The notes under the pieces were generated by a model. It had not been told where the DNA came from, made no database searches, and saw nothing but the letters and a program-made list of their open reading frames with translations. A stretch of 63,853 nt of DNA, the filler included, from Octopus bimaculoides (Eukaryota): assembly GCF_001194135.2 (NCBI RefSeq). It is 5 parts of 5 records of this genome, joined end to end, with 100 filler letters (N's around TTAATTAATTAA, not from the genome) between each part and the next. Parts side by side here need not be neighbours in the genome. Positions count along the whole stretch, not along the records: positions 1 to 26,870 come from NC_068983.1; 4 more parts are not named here. One strand, written 5' to 3'. The position numbers and the translations under genes were made by a program. Below are positions 3,791-21,865 of the stretch, piece after piece. Position 1 is the first letter of the stretch. Every line of letters begins with the position of its first letter.

Positions 3791-4007
3791 CTGGAGGAGG
3801 ACTCAATACCGTATTAGTAGAGTGTTCTCAACAGCTATCATTTTTTTTTAAATGGCTGATTTTACCTTGACTGAAGATTACCGCTGGTATATAATACCCC
3901 ATATCGATAGATGAACCCACCATGTAGGACTTGCATGAAATAGCTCCAAATGGAAACCGAAACCGGGACATCACAGGTGTTGCATTTTCAATATTATTAA
4001 AGTTGAA

Positions 4008-4205
4008 AAGGCGGCGAACTAACAGAATCGTTAGCAAGACGGACAAAATGCTTAGCGGCACTTCGTCCGTCTTTACGTTCTTCGTTGAAATTCCGCCGAG
4101 GTCGACTTTGCTATTCATCTCTTCAGGGTTGATAAAATAAGTACCAGTTGAGCACTGGTATCGCTGTAATCGACTTAGGCTCTTTCCCGAACTTGCTGGC
4201 CTTTA
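4008..4205 (+). mobile_element. SINE family A
   Basis: aaggcggcgaactaacagaatcgttagc...ccgaggtcgactttgc...aagtaccag...gtaatcgactta. Confidence 0.85.
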
Positions 4206-4505
4206 TAAATCAATGTTATTCTAGATGGAAATTCAAATTTCCTTTTCTCAATCATTATCCATCTACAGCGTTACCTTTCATAGAACGGATAACTTTGGAA
4301 GTTTCTATATTTGCCACCAAGCGTGACATCAGGAAATATGGCAGACATACAATCATTATAATTTCACTTTTATCAAATTTTTTTGTTGTTTATACAAAAT
4401 GATGAAATGAATACTAATTTTCAAAAGGAATATATTTATTGCCTTAAAATATAATTAAATGAAATAGATTTCTCATTTGTATAACTACCCCATTACTTCT
4501 TTGTC

Positions 4506-4571: not shown

Positions 4572-4699
4572 ACATAGGATTCACACTCATCCTGCACCTC
4601 CTGTTATCTCTCTCTTTCCCTCTCTCAGTATGCTATACAGCATGACCTGAAAAATTAACCAATATTTCTATCGGGTGTTTTACTTATGTCAGGGTGGGG

Positions 4700-4849
4700 C
4701 ACTGCCCCTGAAGGGTTTAGTCAGACAATTTTTCCCCGGTGCTTAGTCTGTCACTTATTCTATCAGTGTCTCTTGCTGAACTGCTAGATTACGGGAACAT
4801 AGACAAATCAACACCGATTCTCAAACGGTGAAGAGGAACAAACACGAAG

Positions 4850-5805: not shown

Positions 5806-6043
5806 TCAGTCCCCTAGTTTCCGTCCTTCTGCAAGATCCTTTGCGAGCCATATAGAGTCGTAGCGCCGGTTTCCCGGTTTCCGTGGCGCATAGATATATT
5901 TTTCCCTGGACAGGATGCCAGTCTGTCTCGGAAAATGAAATGATTTGTTTTGCTCAAAAACACAACGCATAGCCTGGTCCAGGAATCGAAACCGCAATCT
6001 TACGATCATGAATGCAATACCCTAACCACTAAGCCACGCGCCT
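5806..6043 (-). mobile_element. tRNA-derived SINE family E
   Basis: Reverse complement has A-box (gtggcttagtggttaggg), B-box (ggtttcgattcc) and tgttgtgtttttgagcaaaac core; matches 43509-43640. Confidence 0.8.
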
Positions 6044-6266
6044 CCCCTTCTGCACCAGCATATCATAAATGAGATGATTCGAACCCAGTTATGTGCGCTT
6101 ACAAATCTTCGGAATAATGGTTTAATTGGACAGTTATTACCGTCTATTCGTGTCTCTCCAGCAAAATGGCAGACGATAACTCGTTCTGCTTCCTATGGTT
6201 GATGCGCAGAGATTAGTGAACGCATGCGCAGAGATTAGTCAAAGAAAGTACTCCACTAACATCTAA

Positions 6267-12200: not shown

Positions 12201-13014
12201 AACACGCACACACACTTATACTAAGGTATTTAAACCTACGTTTTGAAGTACTGAGTACTTTCTTTACTACGTGAAAGCCTTGTTCTAATAAACAAGCTGG
12301 AAACGTATACATGCATACTCTCACATATATACACACCTTCGCCTACAAACATGTACATATGTACAAAGACGAATCCAAATACACTCTCTTAGATATGACT
12401 GTGAACAGGCATTCATATCTGTATAAACTTTCTTATATACAATTATATATATGTAGTTGTGTCGAAACCACAATGATTTCCGATAGAGCAGCTAAGGATC
12501 AGATGCTTCAATCCATTTCAATTAAAAGTGTTGTTATTGTGATGTTTGTATAGTTGTTTATACGTTCTCGTTTTTGGTTCGTCATCGGATTGATTGTATC
12601 CCCATTTGTAGTTCTGGTTTCCCATACTGCCTGGCACGGAATTTGGTCTGGATTTATTGTTTCTCTTGCTGGTTCATTGTATGTTTAAGGCTAATTAGGG
12701 TCTTTGTATTTAATTGATCTACATGGAAGGCTTTCATACATTTTTAAGTAATGGCACATCAGATAATTAGTGGTATTATAATTAATGGGCAAGATTTTAG
12801 CTAGTCATTATTTTATTGTGGACTTTGGCATATCTGGTTGTGTCTCCGTGCGTGCGTGTGTGTGTGCGTGTGTGTGCGTGTGTGTGTGTGCGCGCGCCGG
12901 TACATACATATACATAGACGGATACATGGACCTATGAACACTCAGATTTGTGTAAGTTACGCTTCCCTTCTTAAATTTCTATAAACATAATTTATCTATA
13001 TATGTGTATATATA

Positions 13015-17224: not shown

Positions 17225-18435
17225 ACATAGTGCTTAAGCACTATAAAAGTATATCTGCTGAATTTAAGATGAAAGTAAACTGACCGGAATTGGCGACAGT
17301 AAAATCCGATAATTTCGTGTAAATTTGATTAGATGGGTGATGGATATTCGGTTAGGCTGCGTGTTATTCTCATTTAAAAATCAAGTCACCATAAAGATTT
17401 CTCAACGGGTCACACTTATTTACATAAAGACATTACAGAGACTACTAAGAATGTTAAGCTAAATGTGCAGAGTGTTCGTGTGCTGAAAGAGGTAACAAAA
17501 TAAGTCTTCATTTCTGATGAGAAGCTCTTTTAACATGGCTGCCAGTAAACCAAGAATATAACGAACTCCGCTAAGCTTCTCTCTTCTCTAACTAGTCTTT
17601 CCTGTGCATGTCAATCTATGACCATATTTTGGCGAGAATTTGCGTAGAAATTGTCATTTCCACCATGTGATCACATGAATCCACCTGTCATATGATTGGT
17701 CGGAACACAGGGCAAAATCGTCTGACATTTCGTGGTCTTTTTCTTGTTACTGAGATATCAGGGTTTCAAACTCCAAGCATTCTGCTACCAGAGTGTTTGT
17801 CGGGATGTGAGCACAAATGAAAATAATAAAAGTGTAACGAAAATCATTATAAGGCAAAAAAAGCAATGTGTGCCACGTACCCAATAGTGGGGAAAAAACT
17901 AGCAAAGAAAAAACATCATAGAATAAATGCATAGAAATGGAATTCATGCCTAGAATGAGGTGACATGCAGAAAGTTATCTGCGAAAAACTGCAGGGTCAA
18001 AATGTTGCTGATATGAATATAGCACGCAGATAAAGTGTACTAGAAAGATAGAGAAAATTACATGAAAACTAGAGTAAAGTCTAAATTTTAAAATGCTAAC
18101 TGGCAATACAGCAAACAGGGCAAAGGATTAAAATGCAAAATACAAAAGCAAAAGGCTTTAAATTAACCCTGTCACACTGTATTCTCGCTAGAGCGGGAAT
18201 AGGTCAAACATCGTCTCTGCCGAATTCCTGGTGAAGCGGTAATGAACAACACAAGTAGAAAAAGATTACGCAACCGATTCGGTCCATTAGTTTGCCTGCA
18301 ATTGTTACTCTTGAGCTGTGTAAAACAACTATTTATTGTCCATATTTAGAGTTCATGAATGCAAAATTATAACACGCTGAGCACATGCAAAGAGAGAAAG
18401 GAACTAGTTATATACAATTATCTTCTTATGCACAT

Positions 18436-18501
<66 letters not shown>

Positions 18502-18553
18502 TTGTGTGTGTGTGTGTTGTGCATGATGAAGAAAATTGTTTGTGAGCAAGTAA

Positions 18554-18948
18554 GGATTCCACAAAAGCTTTCTTAAGCTTATCAATGTTAACTGCCTCTC
18601 GTTTTCCTTGAATGTGTTTGAGTGTCGTCTGAAGAACACAGTATGGACCAGAATATGAAGTGCTCAAAGGATGCTTTACTACATCATAACGGACGAAAAC
18701 ACAAGTCCAAGCCTTCACATCAGATGGACCATACGTTTTAATTGACTGAGCTCTCACAGTCATCGGAAATGAGTCCACCATGAAGCGTCGCAATCTTTGA
18801 ACACAGCCAATGGGACTGTGCCGCTGGTCATTTGTTCCAGCTGCCACCTGATCCGTACAGTACCGTACAGTAGTTCTGCTGGAAAGTAGCCATGGTCTTC
18901 TTTAATTGTTGTACGTAAACCGAATAATACAGCAGGAAGAGATTCTAA

Positions 18949-19011
<63 letters not shown>

Positions 19012-19104
19012 CGAGTCGACGTGCGCCCGTAAAGCTGCCTTGAGTTGACGATGAAAGCGTTCAGTTATCCCGTTGGAAGGAGGATGAAGGAGGCTGTAGT
19101 ACAA
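18554..19104 (-). pseudogene. Ty3/Gypsy integrase relic (core C-terminus plus GPY/F region)
   Basis: HPPSNGITERFHRQLKAAL...LPAVLFGLRTTIKEDHGYFPAELLYG, then VFVRYDVVKHPLSTSYSGPY...VNIDKLKKAF; interrupted by a (GA)n expansion. Confidence 0.85.
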
Positions 19105-19632
19105 ATTCGTTCTTAATAGGATAGTTTAATCAGTGAATTGATTAGATTCAAAATGTCGGTCGCTGTCTGTTGGGGTAGCATAACGGATCGCTACATAAAG
19201 AAGGAGTTCGCTAAATAGAATTAGGGGATTTCACCAGTTCTCTTCATAGAACTATGGGATGTCACTGTCGTNNNNNNNNNNNNNNNNNNNNNNNNNNNNA
19301 AACCCCTAAGTTGCATGTTAACCACAGAGCGTTCTTCGATCTTAGATAGAAAAATAGCATGATCTCCGAACAGAAACTTTTCTAAATTTCTTCTATAAGA
19401 AAGCTAAGTTTTTTTTTTGTTTTTTTTTGTGAGTGAATTAATTTTAAGAATATATTTGCATCTGTTTATTGAGATTACAATTTTGTTTTAGCATGAGCAA
19501 CAACATTAATGTTGAAATTCAAAATTGATTGCTAGAATTGGTACCAATTCTCTAAAGAAAAGAAACGTCAAATGTAGTTAAAAGTACATTATTTACATTT
19601 GACGGATATTTGTCCTCATCTTGTTTGTTATT

Positions 19633-19678
19633 AACACAACGTTTCGGCTGATATACCCTCAAGCCTTCATCAGGTGTC
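19633..19678 (-). ncRNA. Minimal type I hammerhead ribozyme motif (left arm)
   Basis: Minus strand reads GACAC CTGATGA A GGCT..AGCC GAAA C GTT GTGTT. Confidence 0.7.
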
Positions 19679-19823
19679 TTGGGGAAATTTCGAACCTGGG
19701 TTCTCATTCCTCAGGCATTTTTCGATGTTATTATTATTATTATTAAGGTCACCGCCTCGAATCTAACTCGGAATCTTGGGATTAGTAACCCGCGCTCTTA
19801 ACCACTATGTCATATGCCCGTGA

Positions 19824-19892
19824 GCATATGGCGTAGTGGTTAAGAGCACGGACTACTAACACTAAGATTCCGAGTTCGATTCCAGGCAGTGA

Positions 19893-19895
<3 letters not shown>
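19824..19895 (+). promoter_or_regulatory. tRNA-like Pol III internal promoter head
   Basis: A-box tggcgtagtgg (19829-19839) and B-box gagttcgattcc (19872-19883) with tRNA-like spacing. Confidence 0.75.
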
Positions 19896-19946
<51 letters not shown>

Positions 19947-19994
19947 ATGGAAAAATGCCTTAGGAATGAGGACCCTGGTTCGAAATTTCCCCAA

Positions 19995-20040
19995 GACACC
20001 TGATGAAGGCTTGAGGGTATATCAGCCGAAACGTTGTGTT
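19995..20040 (+). ncRNA. Minimal type I hammerhead ribozyme motif (right arm)
   Basis: Helix I GACAC/GUGUU, core CUGAUGA (20000-20006) plus extra A, helix II GGCU/AGCC, GAAA (20028-20031), palindromic AACGUU; predicted cleavage after 20035. Confidence 0.7.
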
Positions 20041-20641
20041 AACAACAAACAAGATGAGGACAAATATCCGTCAAATGTAAATAATGTACATAATTCCTCA
20101 TTTCTTAAATATAGAATTGTATGTAGTTAAAAGGTTATAAAATTTTCATTGGATATTTCAGCAAAGATTTTCCTTGATGACCTTAAGTGAGGGAAGCTGA
20201 CGTTGATAACAAATGAGAAGAATCGAAAGAGGTTCCCAATAAAATTAGCTTTCCATCTTCATTGATGGATACCGTCGATCAAGATAAGACAAGCTGGGTG
20301 AAAACTTTCACGTTTGGGGGACTTACGAAGTGGATTCACTTTACACTTACATTAGGAACACCGCGGTTGAGATGGAGAGAGAGAGATGAGGAAAGCGCAC
20401 GTCGTGTCTTTGTAGGCATATATGCATCTCTATTCGTGAGCGTGTGTGTGTGTGTGTGCGTGTGTGCGTGTGTGTGTGTGTGTGTGTGCACGTTATGTGT
20501 CTCTGCCTACGTTTGTATGCAAGTGCGTGTGACACGAGTATTACGTGGATAGATATATACGTATGTCAAAACGTACACGTGCGTGTATGTATATATGGGC
20601 GAAGGTGAAGAATATACACACCCGGTGTTTAGGGATAGAGT

Positions 20642-20692
20642 TTAGGGTTAGGGTTAGGGTTAGGGTTAGGGTTAGGGTTAGGGTTAGGGTTA
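20642..20692 (+). repeat. Interstitial telomere-type repeat (TTAGGG)8
   Basis: Eight perfect TTAGGG units plus TTA, preceded by degenerate units. Confidence 0.95.
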
Positions 20693-20734
20693 CGCTGAAA
20701 ACGGGTGGTGTGCGTATTCTTTATCTCCACCATA

Positions 20735-20766
<32 letters not shown>

Positions 20767-21332
20767 TGTGTGTGTGTGTTAATACGAATGAATACTGAGT
20801 TCTAACAACCGGTTATTAGTATTACTATACCCAAGCGATATAAAATGTGTGTGTATCTGTGTGTTTAAAGGCATTTAGTCACACAGATACAACAAAAACC
20901 GACATTAATACATAATAAAGACTGTGGACTGTTTAATGACGGAACCTATATGATGTAGAGAGAGAGAGAGAGAAAGAGAGAGAGAGGCAGACAGACAGAG
21001 ATATTACGAGTGGAGGGTAATAGGCCAGCATACAACCAGTGCATTCGATAAGGCGTACAGACTACTTCATTGAAATTTCAGTTAGCATCGCCCAATTTGC
21101 TGGCTTGGAACCAAAATAAGGAACACTATTTTCGTCGTGTCATTTCCGACTCTTAAAATGATAAATAACGAAACAACAGCACGAAAAATCAACAGAAAAT
21201 AAATACACAAATATTGATGAATGCCTAACTACACAGACACTACAAATAAATCGATTGAGGTCTATATATAGCTATATATGATATATAAAGGCAGTTAGTG
21301 GGCTAAATAAATAGATGGAGGGAGAGACAGAC

Positions 21333-21415
<83 letters not shown>

Positions 21416-21865
21416 GTGTTTAATTTGTGTTCAGCATAGGGACATATAAGCGCGTGTATGTATGTATCGATGGGTGTATATATACATATCTATGTGTGTA
21501 TATGTGTGCGTGCATTTGTATGTTACATATATAAGTATATATAAACATACTTATGTTACAGATATATACATATATATATATTTATTATGTTAGATATATA
21601 TATATATATATATATATANNNNNNNNNNNNNNNNNNNNNNNNNNNNNNNNNNNNNNNNNNNNNNNNNNNNNNNNNNNNNNNNNNNNNNNNNNNNNNNNNN
21701 NNNNNNNNNNNNNNNNNNNNNNNNNNNNNNNNNNNNNNNNNNNNNNNNNNNNNNNNNNNNNNNNNNNNNNNNNNNNNNNNNNNNNNNNNNNNNNNNNNNN
21801 NNNNNNNNNNNNNNNNNNNNNNNNNNNNNNNNNNNNNNNNNNNNNNNNNNNNNNNNNNNNNNNNN

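Follow-up and report, generated by a model that had tools for sequence, protein, structure and literature searches.

Two short units, each with a tRNA-like head and a hammerhead ribozyme motif, stand head-to-head at positions 19572-20133 of a 63,853-nt stretch of Octopus bimaculoides DNA (NCBI RefSeq assembly GCF_001194135.2). We call this whole stretch the window; the twin lies in the part taken from NC_068983.1. The arrangement raises the question of what kind of element this is, which enzyme mobilised it and how two complete units came to share one insertion. We consider it likely that the element is a non-autonomous short interspersed nuclear element (SINE) with a tRNA-type promoter and a 3′ module of the kind carried by Penelope-like elements (PLEs) and animal retrozymes, and that the twin is one insertion made by priming on both target strands from two start sites.

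Anatomy of the insertion

The twin is an inverted repeat of two blocks, with arms at 19584-19817 and 19824-20089 around a 6-nt spacer. The outer block (19584-19728 against 19945-20089, 145 nt) is 97% complementary and the inner block (19728-19817 against 19824-19913, 90 nt) is 87% complementary. Besides 17 mismatched positions, the arms differ in a microsatellite, (ATT)6 on the left and (AAT)16 on the right, which is the sole cause of their difference in length. An exact 13-bp direct repeat, ATGTAGTTAAAAG, adjoins both outer ends of the block, at 19572-19584 and 20121-20133. The locus without the insertion would read AAACGTCAA-ATGTAGTTAAAAG-GTTATAAAA, that is, the two flanks around a single copy of the target. 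A BLAST search of the unit against the window returned no further copy, only (AAT)n matches.

The initial annotation had described the inverted arms, the CCGTGA spacer and the outer direct repeats, a 31-nt extension on the right side only, and within each arm the order head, (AAT)n, linker of about 50 nt, hammerhead and tail. All of these coordinates were confirmed in the sequence, the extension (20090-20120) has no left counterpart, and the hammerhead turned out better than first stated, being a full minimal type-I motif. The features of the insertion are as follows (RT, reverse transcriptase; Pol III, RNA polymerase III).

19572-19584, no strand: left copy of the 13-bp target-site duplication, ATGTAGTTAAAAG, an exact direct repeat; its last G is possibly also the first base of the arm (1-nt overlap)
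19585-19632, minus strand: left arm, region 3′ of the hammerhead, with the short 3′ end ...AAUAAUGUAC and no tail; mirror of 20041-20089, with the same end nucleotide as the monomeric copy at locus L022
19633-19678, minus strand: left arm, minimal type-I hammerhead, core identical to that of the right arm (structural descriptor match)
19679-19727, minus strand: left arm, linker with the B-box-like GGTTCGAAAT (from the arm alignment)
19728-19745, minus strand: left arm, microsatellite, (ATT)6 on the plus strand and (AAT)6 in the sense of the element (from the sequence and the inverted-repeat comparison)
19746-19817, minus strand: left arm, tRNA-like head with A box TGACATAGTGG and B box AGTTAGATTCG, both degenerate; 87% identical to the right head
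19818-19823, no strand: 6-nt spacer CCGTGA between the two facing 5′ ends; differs at other twins
19824-19896, plus strand: right arm, tRNA-like Pol III head, A box 19829-19839, B box 19873-19883
19897-19944, plus strand: right arm, (AAT)16 microsatellite; an A/T-rich microsatellite stands in the same place in loci L010, L011, L016, L020, L023 and L024
19945-19994, plus strand: right arm, 50-nt linker, in which AGGAAUGAGGA at 19962-19972 can pair with the tail (minimum-free-energy fold)
19995-20040, plus strand: right arm, minimal type-I hammerhead, predicted cleavage after U20035 (descriptor match; helix II covariation in 16 related instances)
20041-20089, plus strand: right arm, A/C-rich region to the short-form 3′ end, putative internal RT start site 1; conserved in all relatives, and the left arm and L022 end here
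20090-20120, plus strand: 31-nt tail, right arm only, putative RT start site 2 at its end; homologous tails in P0001, P0011, P0023, P0024, L016, L024 and L027
20121-20133, no strand: right copy of the 13-bp target-site duplication, an exact direct repeat

Here and below, L numbers denote related loci and P numbers related predicted proteins.

The hammerhead and the 3′ module

The right-arm hammerhead reads GACAC / CUGAUGA / A / GGCU-UGAGGGUAUAUC-AGCC / GAA / ACGU / U / GUGUU, and its core is complete (CUGAUGA at 20000-20006, GAA at 20028-20030, A20031...U20034, and U20035). Without constraints, the minimum-free-energy fold contains both helix I (GACAC/GUGUU, 5 bp) and helix II (GGCU/AGCC, 4 bp, with a 12-nt loop). 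Helix III lacks a hairpin and consists of the palindrome ACGU (20031-20034) only, which is followed by the predicted cleavage-site nucleotide, U20035. Three features were reported for the minimal hammerheads of PLEs by Cervera and de la Pena, whose search did not presuppose them: A9 and G10.1 are separated by an extra nucleotide, G10.1 pairs with C11.1, and positions 15.2-16.2 are palindromic (PMC4209133). All three are present at this locus, with A20007 between A9 and G10.1, G20008-C20027 as G10.1-C11.1, and a palindromic 15.2-16.2.

A descriptor that required all of the hammerhead features matched the window twice, once in each arm, and gave no match in 20 Mb of composition-matched first-order Markov sequence searched on both strands (40 Mb). 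By itself, the loose pattern CUGAUGA...GAAA is expected to turn up about 0.5 times in 24 kb. The weight of the hammerhead call lies in its structural context. The loose core pattern (CUGANGA...GAAA) alone cannot be taken as evidence, because one such match, at 12747-12802 (minus strand) of L025, proved false: it is the reverse complement of a tRNA-like head, whose B and A boxes mimic CUGAAGA...GAAAC, and it was rejected as a hammerhead. Helix II, further, changes in length and sequence and yet stays paired across 16 related hammerheads (GGCU/AGCC, GGCCA/UGGCC, GGCCGA/UCGGCC, GGACAG/CUGUCC, GGCUUC/GAAGCC and GGCCAGA/UUUGGCC, for example).

The hammerhead belongs to a 3′ module of about 126 nt, in which it is followed by the A/C-rich stretch and the optional 31-nt tail. 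In the minimum-free-energy fold an 11-bp stem closes the module by pairing 19962-19972 (AGGAATGAGGA) with 20095-20105 in the tail (TCCTCATTTCT), although the fold z score of -2.3 is modest. Measured from the AUG within CUGAUGA, the two 3′ ends are 87 and 118 nt away, and in the alignment tail-bearing and tail-less copies both occur among the relatives. The module is the kind of sequence that is found at the junctions between pseudo-long-terminal-repeat (pseudo-LTR) and open reading frame (ORF) in PLEs, and also as the repeat unit of animal retrozymes.

The tRNA-like head

The A box of the right arm, TGGCGTAGTGG, matches TRGCNNAGTGG exactly, and 33 nt downstream of it stands the B box, AGTTCGATTCC, in which 10 of 11 positions fit the consensus. 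In the left arm, both boxes are degenerate. With its default settings ARAGORN called no tRNA in the element, and at the 80% threshold it reported a weak pseudo-tRNA only. The term 'tRNA-like' refers here to the promoter boxes and to a general likeness to the heads of tRNA-derived SINEs, and not to a foldable tRNA.

The unit is 234-297 nt long and non-coding. It is dispersed in many copies, at the unrelated loci L010, L011, L016, L020, L022, L023 and L024 and in two predicted proteins of O. bimaculoides. Neither arm contains a run of TTTT, so that nothing within the unit would stop Pol III early; the first such run lies outside it on either side, at 20143 (right) and 19583 (left). Its 3′ ends read ...AAUAAUGUAC (short form) or ...UAUAGAAUUGU (long form) and have neither an A-run nor a simple repeat, and no poly(A), microsatellite or recognisable tail of a long interspersed nuclear element (LINE) was seen at the 3′ end in the sequence of the unit.

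The junction between the two heads (19767-19874 in the window, 164-279 in L011) matches Rfam microRNA precursors below the gathering threshold, namely MIR5380 (E = 1.5e-9), mir-885 and mir-9. These matches are hairpin artefacts. Head-to-head twins thus give rise to spurious microRNA-precursor matches, and if the whole twin were transcribed through, the RNA would fold as a double-stranded hairpin of about 250 bp (-374 kcal/mol).

Relatives in octopuses and other cephalopods

We looked for relatives by comparing the translated open frame of the 3′ module (19945-20127) with protein collections. A word-indexed protein search gave a single match, A0A0L8FV75 of O. bimaculoides (P0001), which is 81% identical and extends through the tail. 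A phmmer search against 1.84 billion representatives recovered 95 relatives in two groups, and among them two O. bimaculoides proteins, P0001 and P0038. The octopus-type group includes P0038 and contigs assembled from the read sets SRR11869384-94, and the second group sits on long ENA contigs, including L025. Viral and prokaryotic genome collections gave no match in pattern scans, and a pattern scan of metagenomes returned nine animal-derived loci with the same hammerhead core.

P0038 is XP_052825882.1 (O. bimaculoides, GCA_001194135.2), annotated as 'dystrobrevin beta isoform X1'. Its N-terminus, from the first exon (MPMGIWHSGEGWRVYQPKCCVNNKQDEDKYPS...), translates the hammerhead region of the element; it is an exonised copy or else an artefact of annotation.

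Sequences of the second group are found in ENA ERZ21867824 and also in NCBI GCA_041192925.1. Its contig L025 encodes, beside a copy of the element, a 490-aa ORF rich in Gly, Tyr and His, which looks like a suckerin rather than an RT. We tentatively assign L025 to a squid or cuttlefish, taking this ORF as a hint only. At the DNA level, the copy in L025 and the window share 84% identity across the hammerhead and A/C-rich stretch. In this group the peptide ...TPEEGRRTYRPKRCGNNNKDEDNSPKTLNDKNHQASSQKFRQ recurs head-to-tail with a period of 44 residues (P0003, P0004), that is, in DNA units of 132 nt, each of which begins shortly before the hammerhead and finishes where the tail does. The octopus 3′ module is therefore the counterpart of a single repeat in a tandem hammerhead array, the arrangement by which animal retrozymes are defined. 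The family of units of about 300 nt occurs in octopuses and in other cephalopods.

The module of the probable squid or cuttlefish (P0003, P0004 and P0064; L025 10053-10180 and 10433-10488; L026) has a CUGAAGA core. Besides its 132-nt tandem arrays, it also stands behind a long upstream region with the B-box-like GGTTCAATCCT.

Twins recur among the relatives. L011 and L014 show a second full twin, composed of the body in reverse complement, a short (ATT)n, the head in reverse complement, a spacer of about 9 nt, and then head, (AAT)n and body. Its flanks are unrelated to those in the window, and the locus is present in contigs from five separate read sets, two of which (L011 and L014) span both arms. 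L016 is a twin in which both arms are cut short in the linker. In L027, from a JGI metagenome, a 12-bp duplication, AGTATGTAGTAT, lies at 2547-2558 and 2799-2810; the left arm is cut inside the hammerhead, and the right arm alone carries a 31-nt tail, ATAATACCTCATCTCAAAAACACAGAGATAT, which is clearly homologous to that of the window, CATAATTCCTCATTTCTTAAATATAGAATTGT. L001, from another metagenome and of a different family, has two arms of some 180 nt each with 4 nt between them, a 16-bp duplication (2117-2132 and 2537-2552) and, on a single side, an extension of 35 nt. Further, in many predicted proteins (P0023, P0030, P0033, P0048, P0051 and P0052) a reverse-complement copy reads straight into a forward copy. 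L022, in contrast to the twins, is a monomer. It has a different tRNA-like head, and its short 3′ end, ...AATAATGTAC, is the same as that of the left arm in the window. In L020 two inverted copies face each other by their heads at a distance of 343 nt, possibly as separate events.

The initial annotation had asked whether the spacer and the 3′ extension are constant and whether the duplication encloses the whole palindrome in other copies. The spacer is not constant (6, about 9 and 4 nt in the window, L011 and L001), and CCGTGA is for this reason not regarded as part of the element. The tail is present or absent by copy, and the duplication flanks the whole palindrome also at L027 and L001.

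How the twin may have formed

In PLE insertions an inverted copy lies next to the 5′ end, and there is a tail of 30-40 bp, often at one end only (PMC8557442). A purified Poseidon enzyme nicks and extends both strands in vitro (Frangieh et al., PMC11167929). Its reverse transcription starts at two internal sites, and the stretch between them is the tail; in the Anolis element, the ORF begins at the hammerhead and reverse transcription starts 111-118 nt into the ORF (PMC11167929). The same signature is found in the window, with an inverted copy joined at the 5′ end, a one-sided tail of 31 nt and a duplication around the whole composite. The duplication measures 13 bp in the window, 12 bp in L027 and 16 bp in L001, and the inverted layout joined at the 5′ end recurs in L011, L016, L027 and L001. 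Since arm lengths, truncation points and spacers differ between loci, the twins appear to have been made at integration.

In the mechanism that we infer, Pol III would transcribe a source copy through the whole unit, and the RT/GIY-YIG endonuclease of a PLE would bind the 3′ module of the transcript. The enzyme would nick both target strands 13 bp apart in AT-rich DNA. Each 3′-OH would then prime copying of the SINE RNA, one from the internal site that ends at 20089 (mirrored at 19584) and the other about 31 nt further 3′ (20120). Both cDNAs would reach the 5′ end of the transcript and be joined with 6 extra nucleotides, and the product would be a head-to-head twin within a single target-site duplication. 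Because both arms span the cleavage site U20035, the templates would have been uncleaved, and cleavage there would part the promoter head from the start sites. In agreement with uncleaved templates, unprocessed RNA is the main substrate in vitro (PMC11167929). The hammerhead probably serves mainly as part of the module recognised by the enzyme.

Part of what the initial annotation had proposed for the origin of the unit fits these results. A non-autonomous unit with a Pol III head agrees with its length of about 300 nt, its lack of coding capacity and its many copies, and the idea of a retrozyme hybrid gains support from the 132-nt tandem unit in the probable squid or cuttlefish. The proposed mobilisation by a PLE stands in part: the hammerhead is of the PLE type and the insertion signature appears at independent loci, but no autonomous PLE with the same 3′ module was present among the matches listed.

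Several results weigh against this reading. A profile of the frame that starts at the hammerhead yielded, among the 120 of 244 matches listed, ORFs of 39-77 aa only, with no Pfam domain. No RT ORF adjoined the related hammerheads in L001-L009 or L025, and no PLE ORF was found in the nine metagenome loci with the same hammerhead core. A PLE ORF starting at the conserved AUG, 24 nt past the cleavage site, would overlap the profile query too little to score, and we regard the lack of a PLE partner among the results as a limit of the search rather than as evidence of absence. In Octopus vulgaris, 30 recently active Penelope families have been reported (PMC13282606), a point that speaks for the PLE reading. 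The Rfam hammerhead models gave no match in the window either at the gathering threshold or at E<=10, which is expected because the form is minimal and has no helix III hairpin. Minimal hammerheads cleave poorly in vitro (PMC4209133), and self-cleavage of the present one is a prediction. The Rfam tRNA model, likewise, had no match in the window or in the related loci. Finally, the two arms diverge more in their heads (12 of 90 positions) than in their bodies (5 of 145; Fisher p = 0.008), and no more than three or four of the differences between the heads are CpG transitions. One template for both arms does not account for this contrast. Two different template RNAs, one for each priming event, patchy gene conversion or a faster decay of the CpG-rich heads would explain it.

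Alternative origins

An ordinary tRNA SINE mobilised by a LINE (an RTE or CR1 element, for example), with a hammerhead that has nothing to do with PLEs and a twin made by LINE 'twin priming', seems improbable to us. Several points speak for a LINE: octopus SINEs are usually annotated as tRNA-Core or tRNA-Deu, LINEs of the RTE, CR1 and Dong-R4 types abound and are active, the window itself contains a degenerate LINE RT fragment (23277-24468), and no PLE partner was found among the matches listed. In L1 twin priming, which Ostertag and Kazazian are said to have described in 2001, both nicked strands reportedly prime, so that inverted segments lie inside one target duplication. That process, however, turns a single RNA into one inverted copy that is truncated or internally deleted, whereas the octopus twin consists of two complete units that meet 5′ to 5′ and end at two different internal 3′ sites. 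Moreover, neither a poly(A) nor a microsatellite nor a recognisable LINE tail stands at the 3′ end of the unit, the hammerhead combines features specific to PLEs with pairing that is conserved, and a module homologous to that of the window forms tandem hammerhead arrays in another cephalopod. The discrete, optional tail of 31 nt is a signature described as unique to PLEs (PMC11167929).

The initial annotation also suggested that the element may propagate as a fold-back dimer, so that the palindrome itself would be the transposing unit. The recurrence of twins at several loci is what such a dimer would predict, but the rest of the evidence makes it very unlikely. The arms are full in the window and in L011 but cut in the hammerhead (left arm of L027) or in the linker (L016), the spacers vary (6, about 9 and 4 nt), the arms of the window differ by 13% in the head, and the monomer L022 exists. 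A Pol III transcript started from one head, further, would run away from the other arm.

We give similarly little credence to the insertion of a monomer that was later doubled by an inverted duplication, through an error of fold-back replication or through hairpin repair. Palindromes can arise after insertion, and the arm bodies are 97% identical. A duplicated flank would, however, leave inverted flanking repeats, whereas the 13-bp repeats of this locus are direct; the arms stop at two different 3′ ends that are both typical of the family, and the layout with a one-sided tail is found also in three other genomes.

It is highly improbable that the structure is an assembly artefact caused by a read that was chimeric or folded back on itself, or that it is a DNA transposon bounded by long terminal inverted repeats, of the foldback type or a miniature inverted-repeat transposable element (MITE). 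The scaffold is rich in gaps, with nine N runs in the window, and a target duplication with long inverted repeats is superficially MITE-like. Nevertheless, all nine N runs lie outside 19300-21618, where the assembly has no gap, and an artefact would give a perfect palindrome, whereas the arms show 17 mismatches and microsatellites of unequal length. The twin locus L011 recurs in contigs from five read sets, two of which span both arms, and a 13-bp duplication with asymmetric ends does not fit cut-and-paste transposons. Two independent insertions that met head-to-head by chance, as the two inverted copies of L020 (343 nt apart) may have done, are hardly credible where a single duplication surrounds the whole block, none surrounds either arm and the 5′ ends are merely 6 nt apart.

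Comparison with known elements

The octopus element is closest in function to PLE pseudo-LTR ends and to non-autonomous elements that depend on PLEs, among them animal retrozymes and MRC1, and closest in design to the schistosome SINE-like elements Sm-alpha and Sj-alpha.

The octopus element resembles the Penelope, Poseidon and Neptune PLEs in its minimal type-I hammerhead, with the bulged nucleotide after A9, the G10.1-C11.1 pair and a palindromic helix III without a loop, and also in the inverted copy joined at the 5′ end, the one-sided tail of about 31 nt, the duplication of variable length and the AT-rich target. The distances from its hammerhead to its 3′ ends, further, resemble the spacing of the two RT start sites in the Anolis Poseidon element. 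It differs from PLEs in having no RT/GIY-YIG ORF and a length of only about 300 nt; it is set beside the autonomous PLEs by structure and not by sequence identity. Also, it begins with a tRNA-type Pol III promoter, whereas PLEs begin with a pseudo-LTR promoter, and both of its arms are full length, whereas a PLE has one arm truncated at the 5′ end.

Sm-alpha and Sj-alpha, like the octopus element, are short, non-coding and multi-copy and combine a Pol III promoter with an internal hammerhead (PMC6765202). As far as their descriptions allow comparison, they have a canonical type-I hammerhead and are largely tandem (PMC6765202, PMC4209133), in contrast to the minimal PLE-type hammerhead and the dispersed copies, often inverted twins, of the octopus element.

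Animal non-LTR retrozymes are likewise non-autonomous and bear hammerheads, and a dependence on PLEs has been proposed for them (Cervera and de la Pena 2020; Li et al. 2026 preprint); they were proposed in 2020 and argued to be derived from PLEs in the July 2026 preprint (Li et al.). Tandem repeats are their defining feature, no promoter is known for them and their expression is as circular RNAs, whereas the octopus element has one module behind a Pol III head, and its copies in the window are inverted and not tandem.

MRC1 of Chlamydomonas, of the Chlamys clade, is also short, shares its 3′ end with an autonomous PLE and forms pseudo-LTR or multi-copy insertions, according to the sections of PMC8557442 that deal with it. 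Those sections mention no Pol III head in MRC1, and in them Chlamys and Naiad elements are without canonical hammerheads (PMC8557442).

The Ceph-SINEs of squid and cuttlefish and the OK and OR SINEs of octopus share with the present element a tRNA-derived head in a cephalopod genome. The Ceph-domain, however, combines a CORE-like piece with a piece of an RTE 5′ untranslated region that includes CCTCCAGCTATGGGTTAAATAGT (PMC5786205). This diagnostic 23-mer is absent from the window even when 3 mismatches are allowed, and membership of the Ceph-SINEs was rejected.

Implications

It is by their dependence on LINEs that SINEs are defined. A Pol III SINE with a recognition module borrowed from a PLE would widen this definition, and would link SINEs, animal retrozymes and PLE pseudo-LTRs, which are now treated separately. 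On the best reading, the locus shows the head of a Pol III SINE joined to a single Penelope/retrozyme hammerhead unit, captured as a twin insertion primed on two strands. In full-text searches of the literature we found no description of a cephalopod tRNA-headed SINE with a PLE-type hammerhead, and an entry in Repbase or Dfam is possible. More tentatively, there may be a whole cephalopod class of true Pol III tRNA-headed SINEs whose tail is one Penelope/retrozyme hammerhead unit and which are copied by PLE and not by LINE enzymes.

SINEs are unusually abundant in octopus genomes, and the majority are unclassified (PMC13282606). If such a class exists, part of these 'unclassified' octopus SINEs (SINEs make up about 8-12% of the genome) could be driven by PLEs, and the identity of the driving enzyme bears on how octopus genomes expanded. 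The twins would then also be a natural record, in vivo, of priming on two strands from two start sites, which has so far been shown only in vitro. The locus offers genomic evidence for the PLE mechanism inferred in vitro in 2024, with both strands nicked and extended and two internal start sites about 30 nt apart.

Target sites and other features

An 11-mer, CGTCAAATGTA, in the left flank of the twin (19566-19576, across the edge of the duplication) recurs in the 3′ region of the element at 20068-20078 and in its mirror at 19595-19605. This degree of sharing was reached by 35 of 20,000 shuffles and by none of 3,286 real 40-mers of the window. L022 shows a weaker parallel, with GTCTGTTGTAA in its 5′ flank and GTCTGTTATAA near its 3′ end. 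ATGTAGT is common to the duplications of the window (ATGTAGTTAAAAG) and of L027 (AGTATGTAGTAT; p about 0.009), and the L001 duplication, ATGATGCAGTATACAG, has AGTAT in common with that of L027, so that a common target motif is possible. The match of the flank and the ATGTAGT common to two duplications are suggestive only of an endonuclease that prefers targets like the start-site region of the element itself; the same preference has been reported for Penelope in the cited papers.

Three other features were noted elsewhere in the window. At about 5960-6090 on the minus strand lies another, unrelated tRNA-like SINE head, with an A box, TGGCTTAGTGG, at 6026-6036 and GGTTTCGATTCC downstream; it has no hammerhead and is followed by a TTTTT run. 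On the same strand, 23277-24468 is the decayed remnant of a LINE-type RT, with a weak RVT_1 match and the motifs SVRQGCPLS and AYANY, and 18404-19104 is a decayed ORF that is integrase-like by eye (NGITERFHRQLK). Neither of these two fragments resembles a PLE.

Among the related loci, L004 carries on its opposite strand an RTE LINE, which we judged to be unrelated. L003 holds two inverted pairs of hammerheads, one at 4576-4627 (minus strand) and 4751-4802 (plus strand) and the other within 3929-4235. The pair at 4576-4802 belongs to a different family of minimal hammerheads, one copy of which has a helix I of 7 bp, a helix II of 6 bp and, as helix III, the palindrome ACAUGU of 6 nt.

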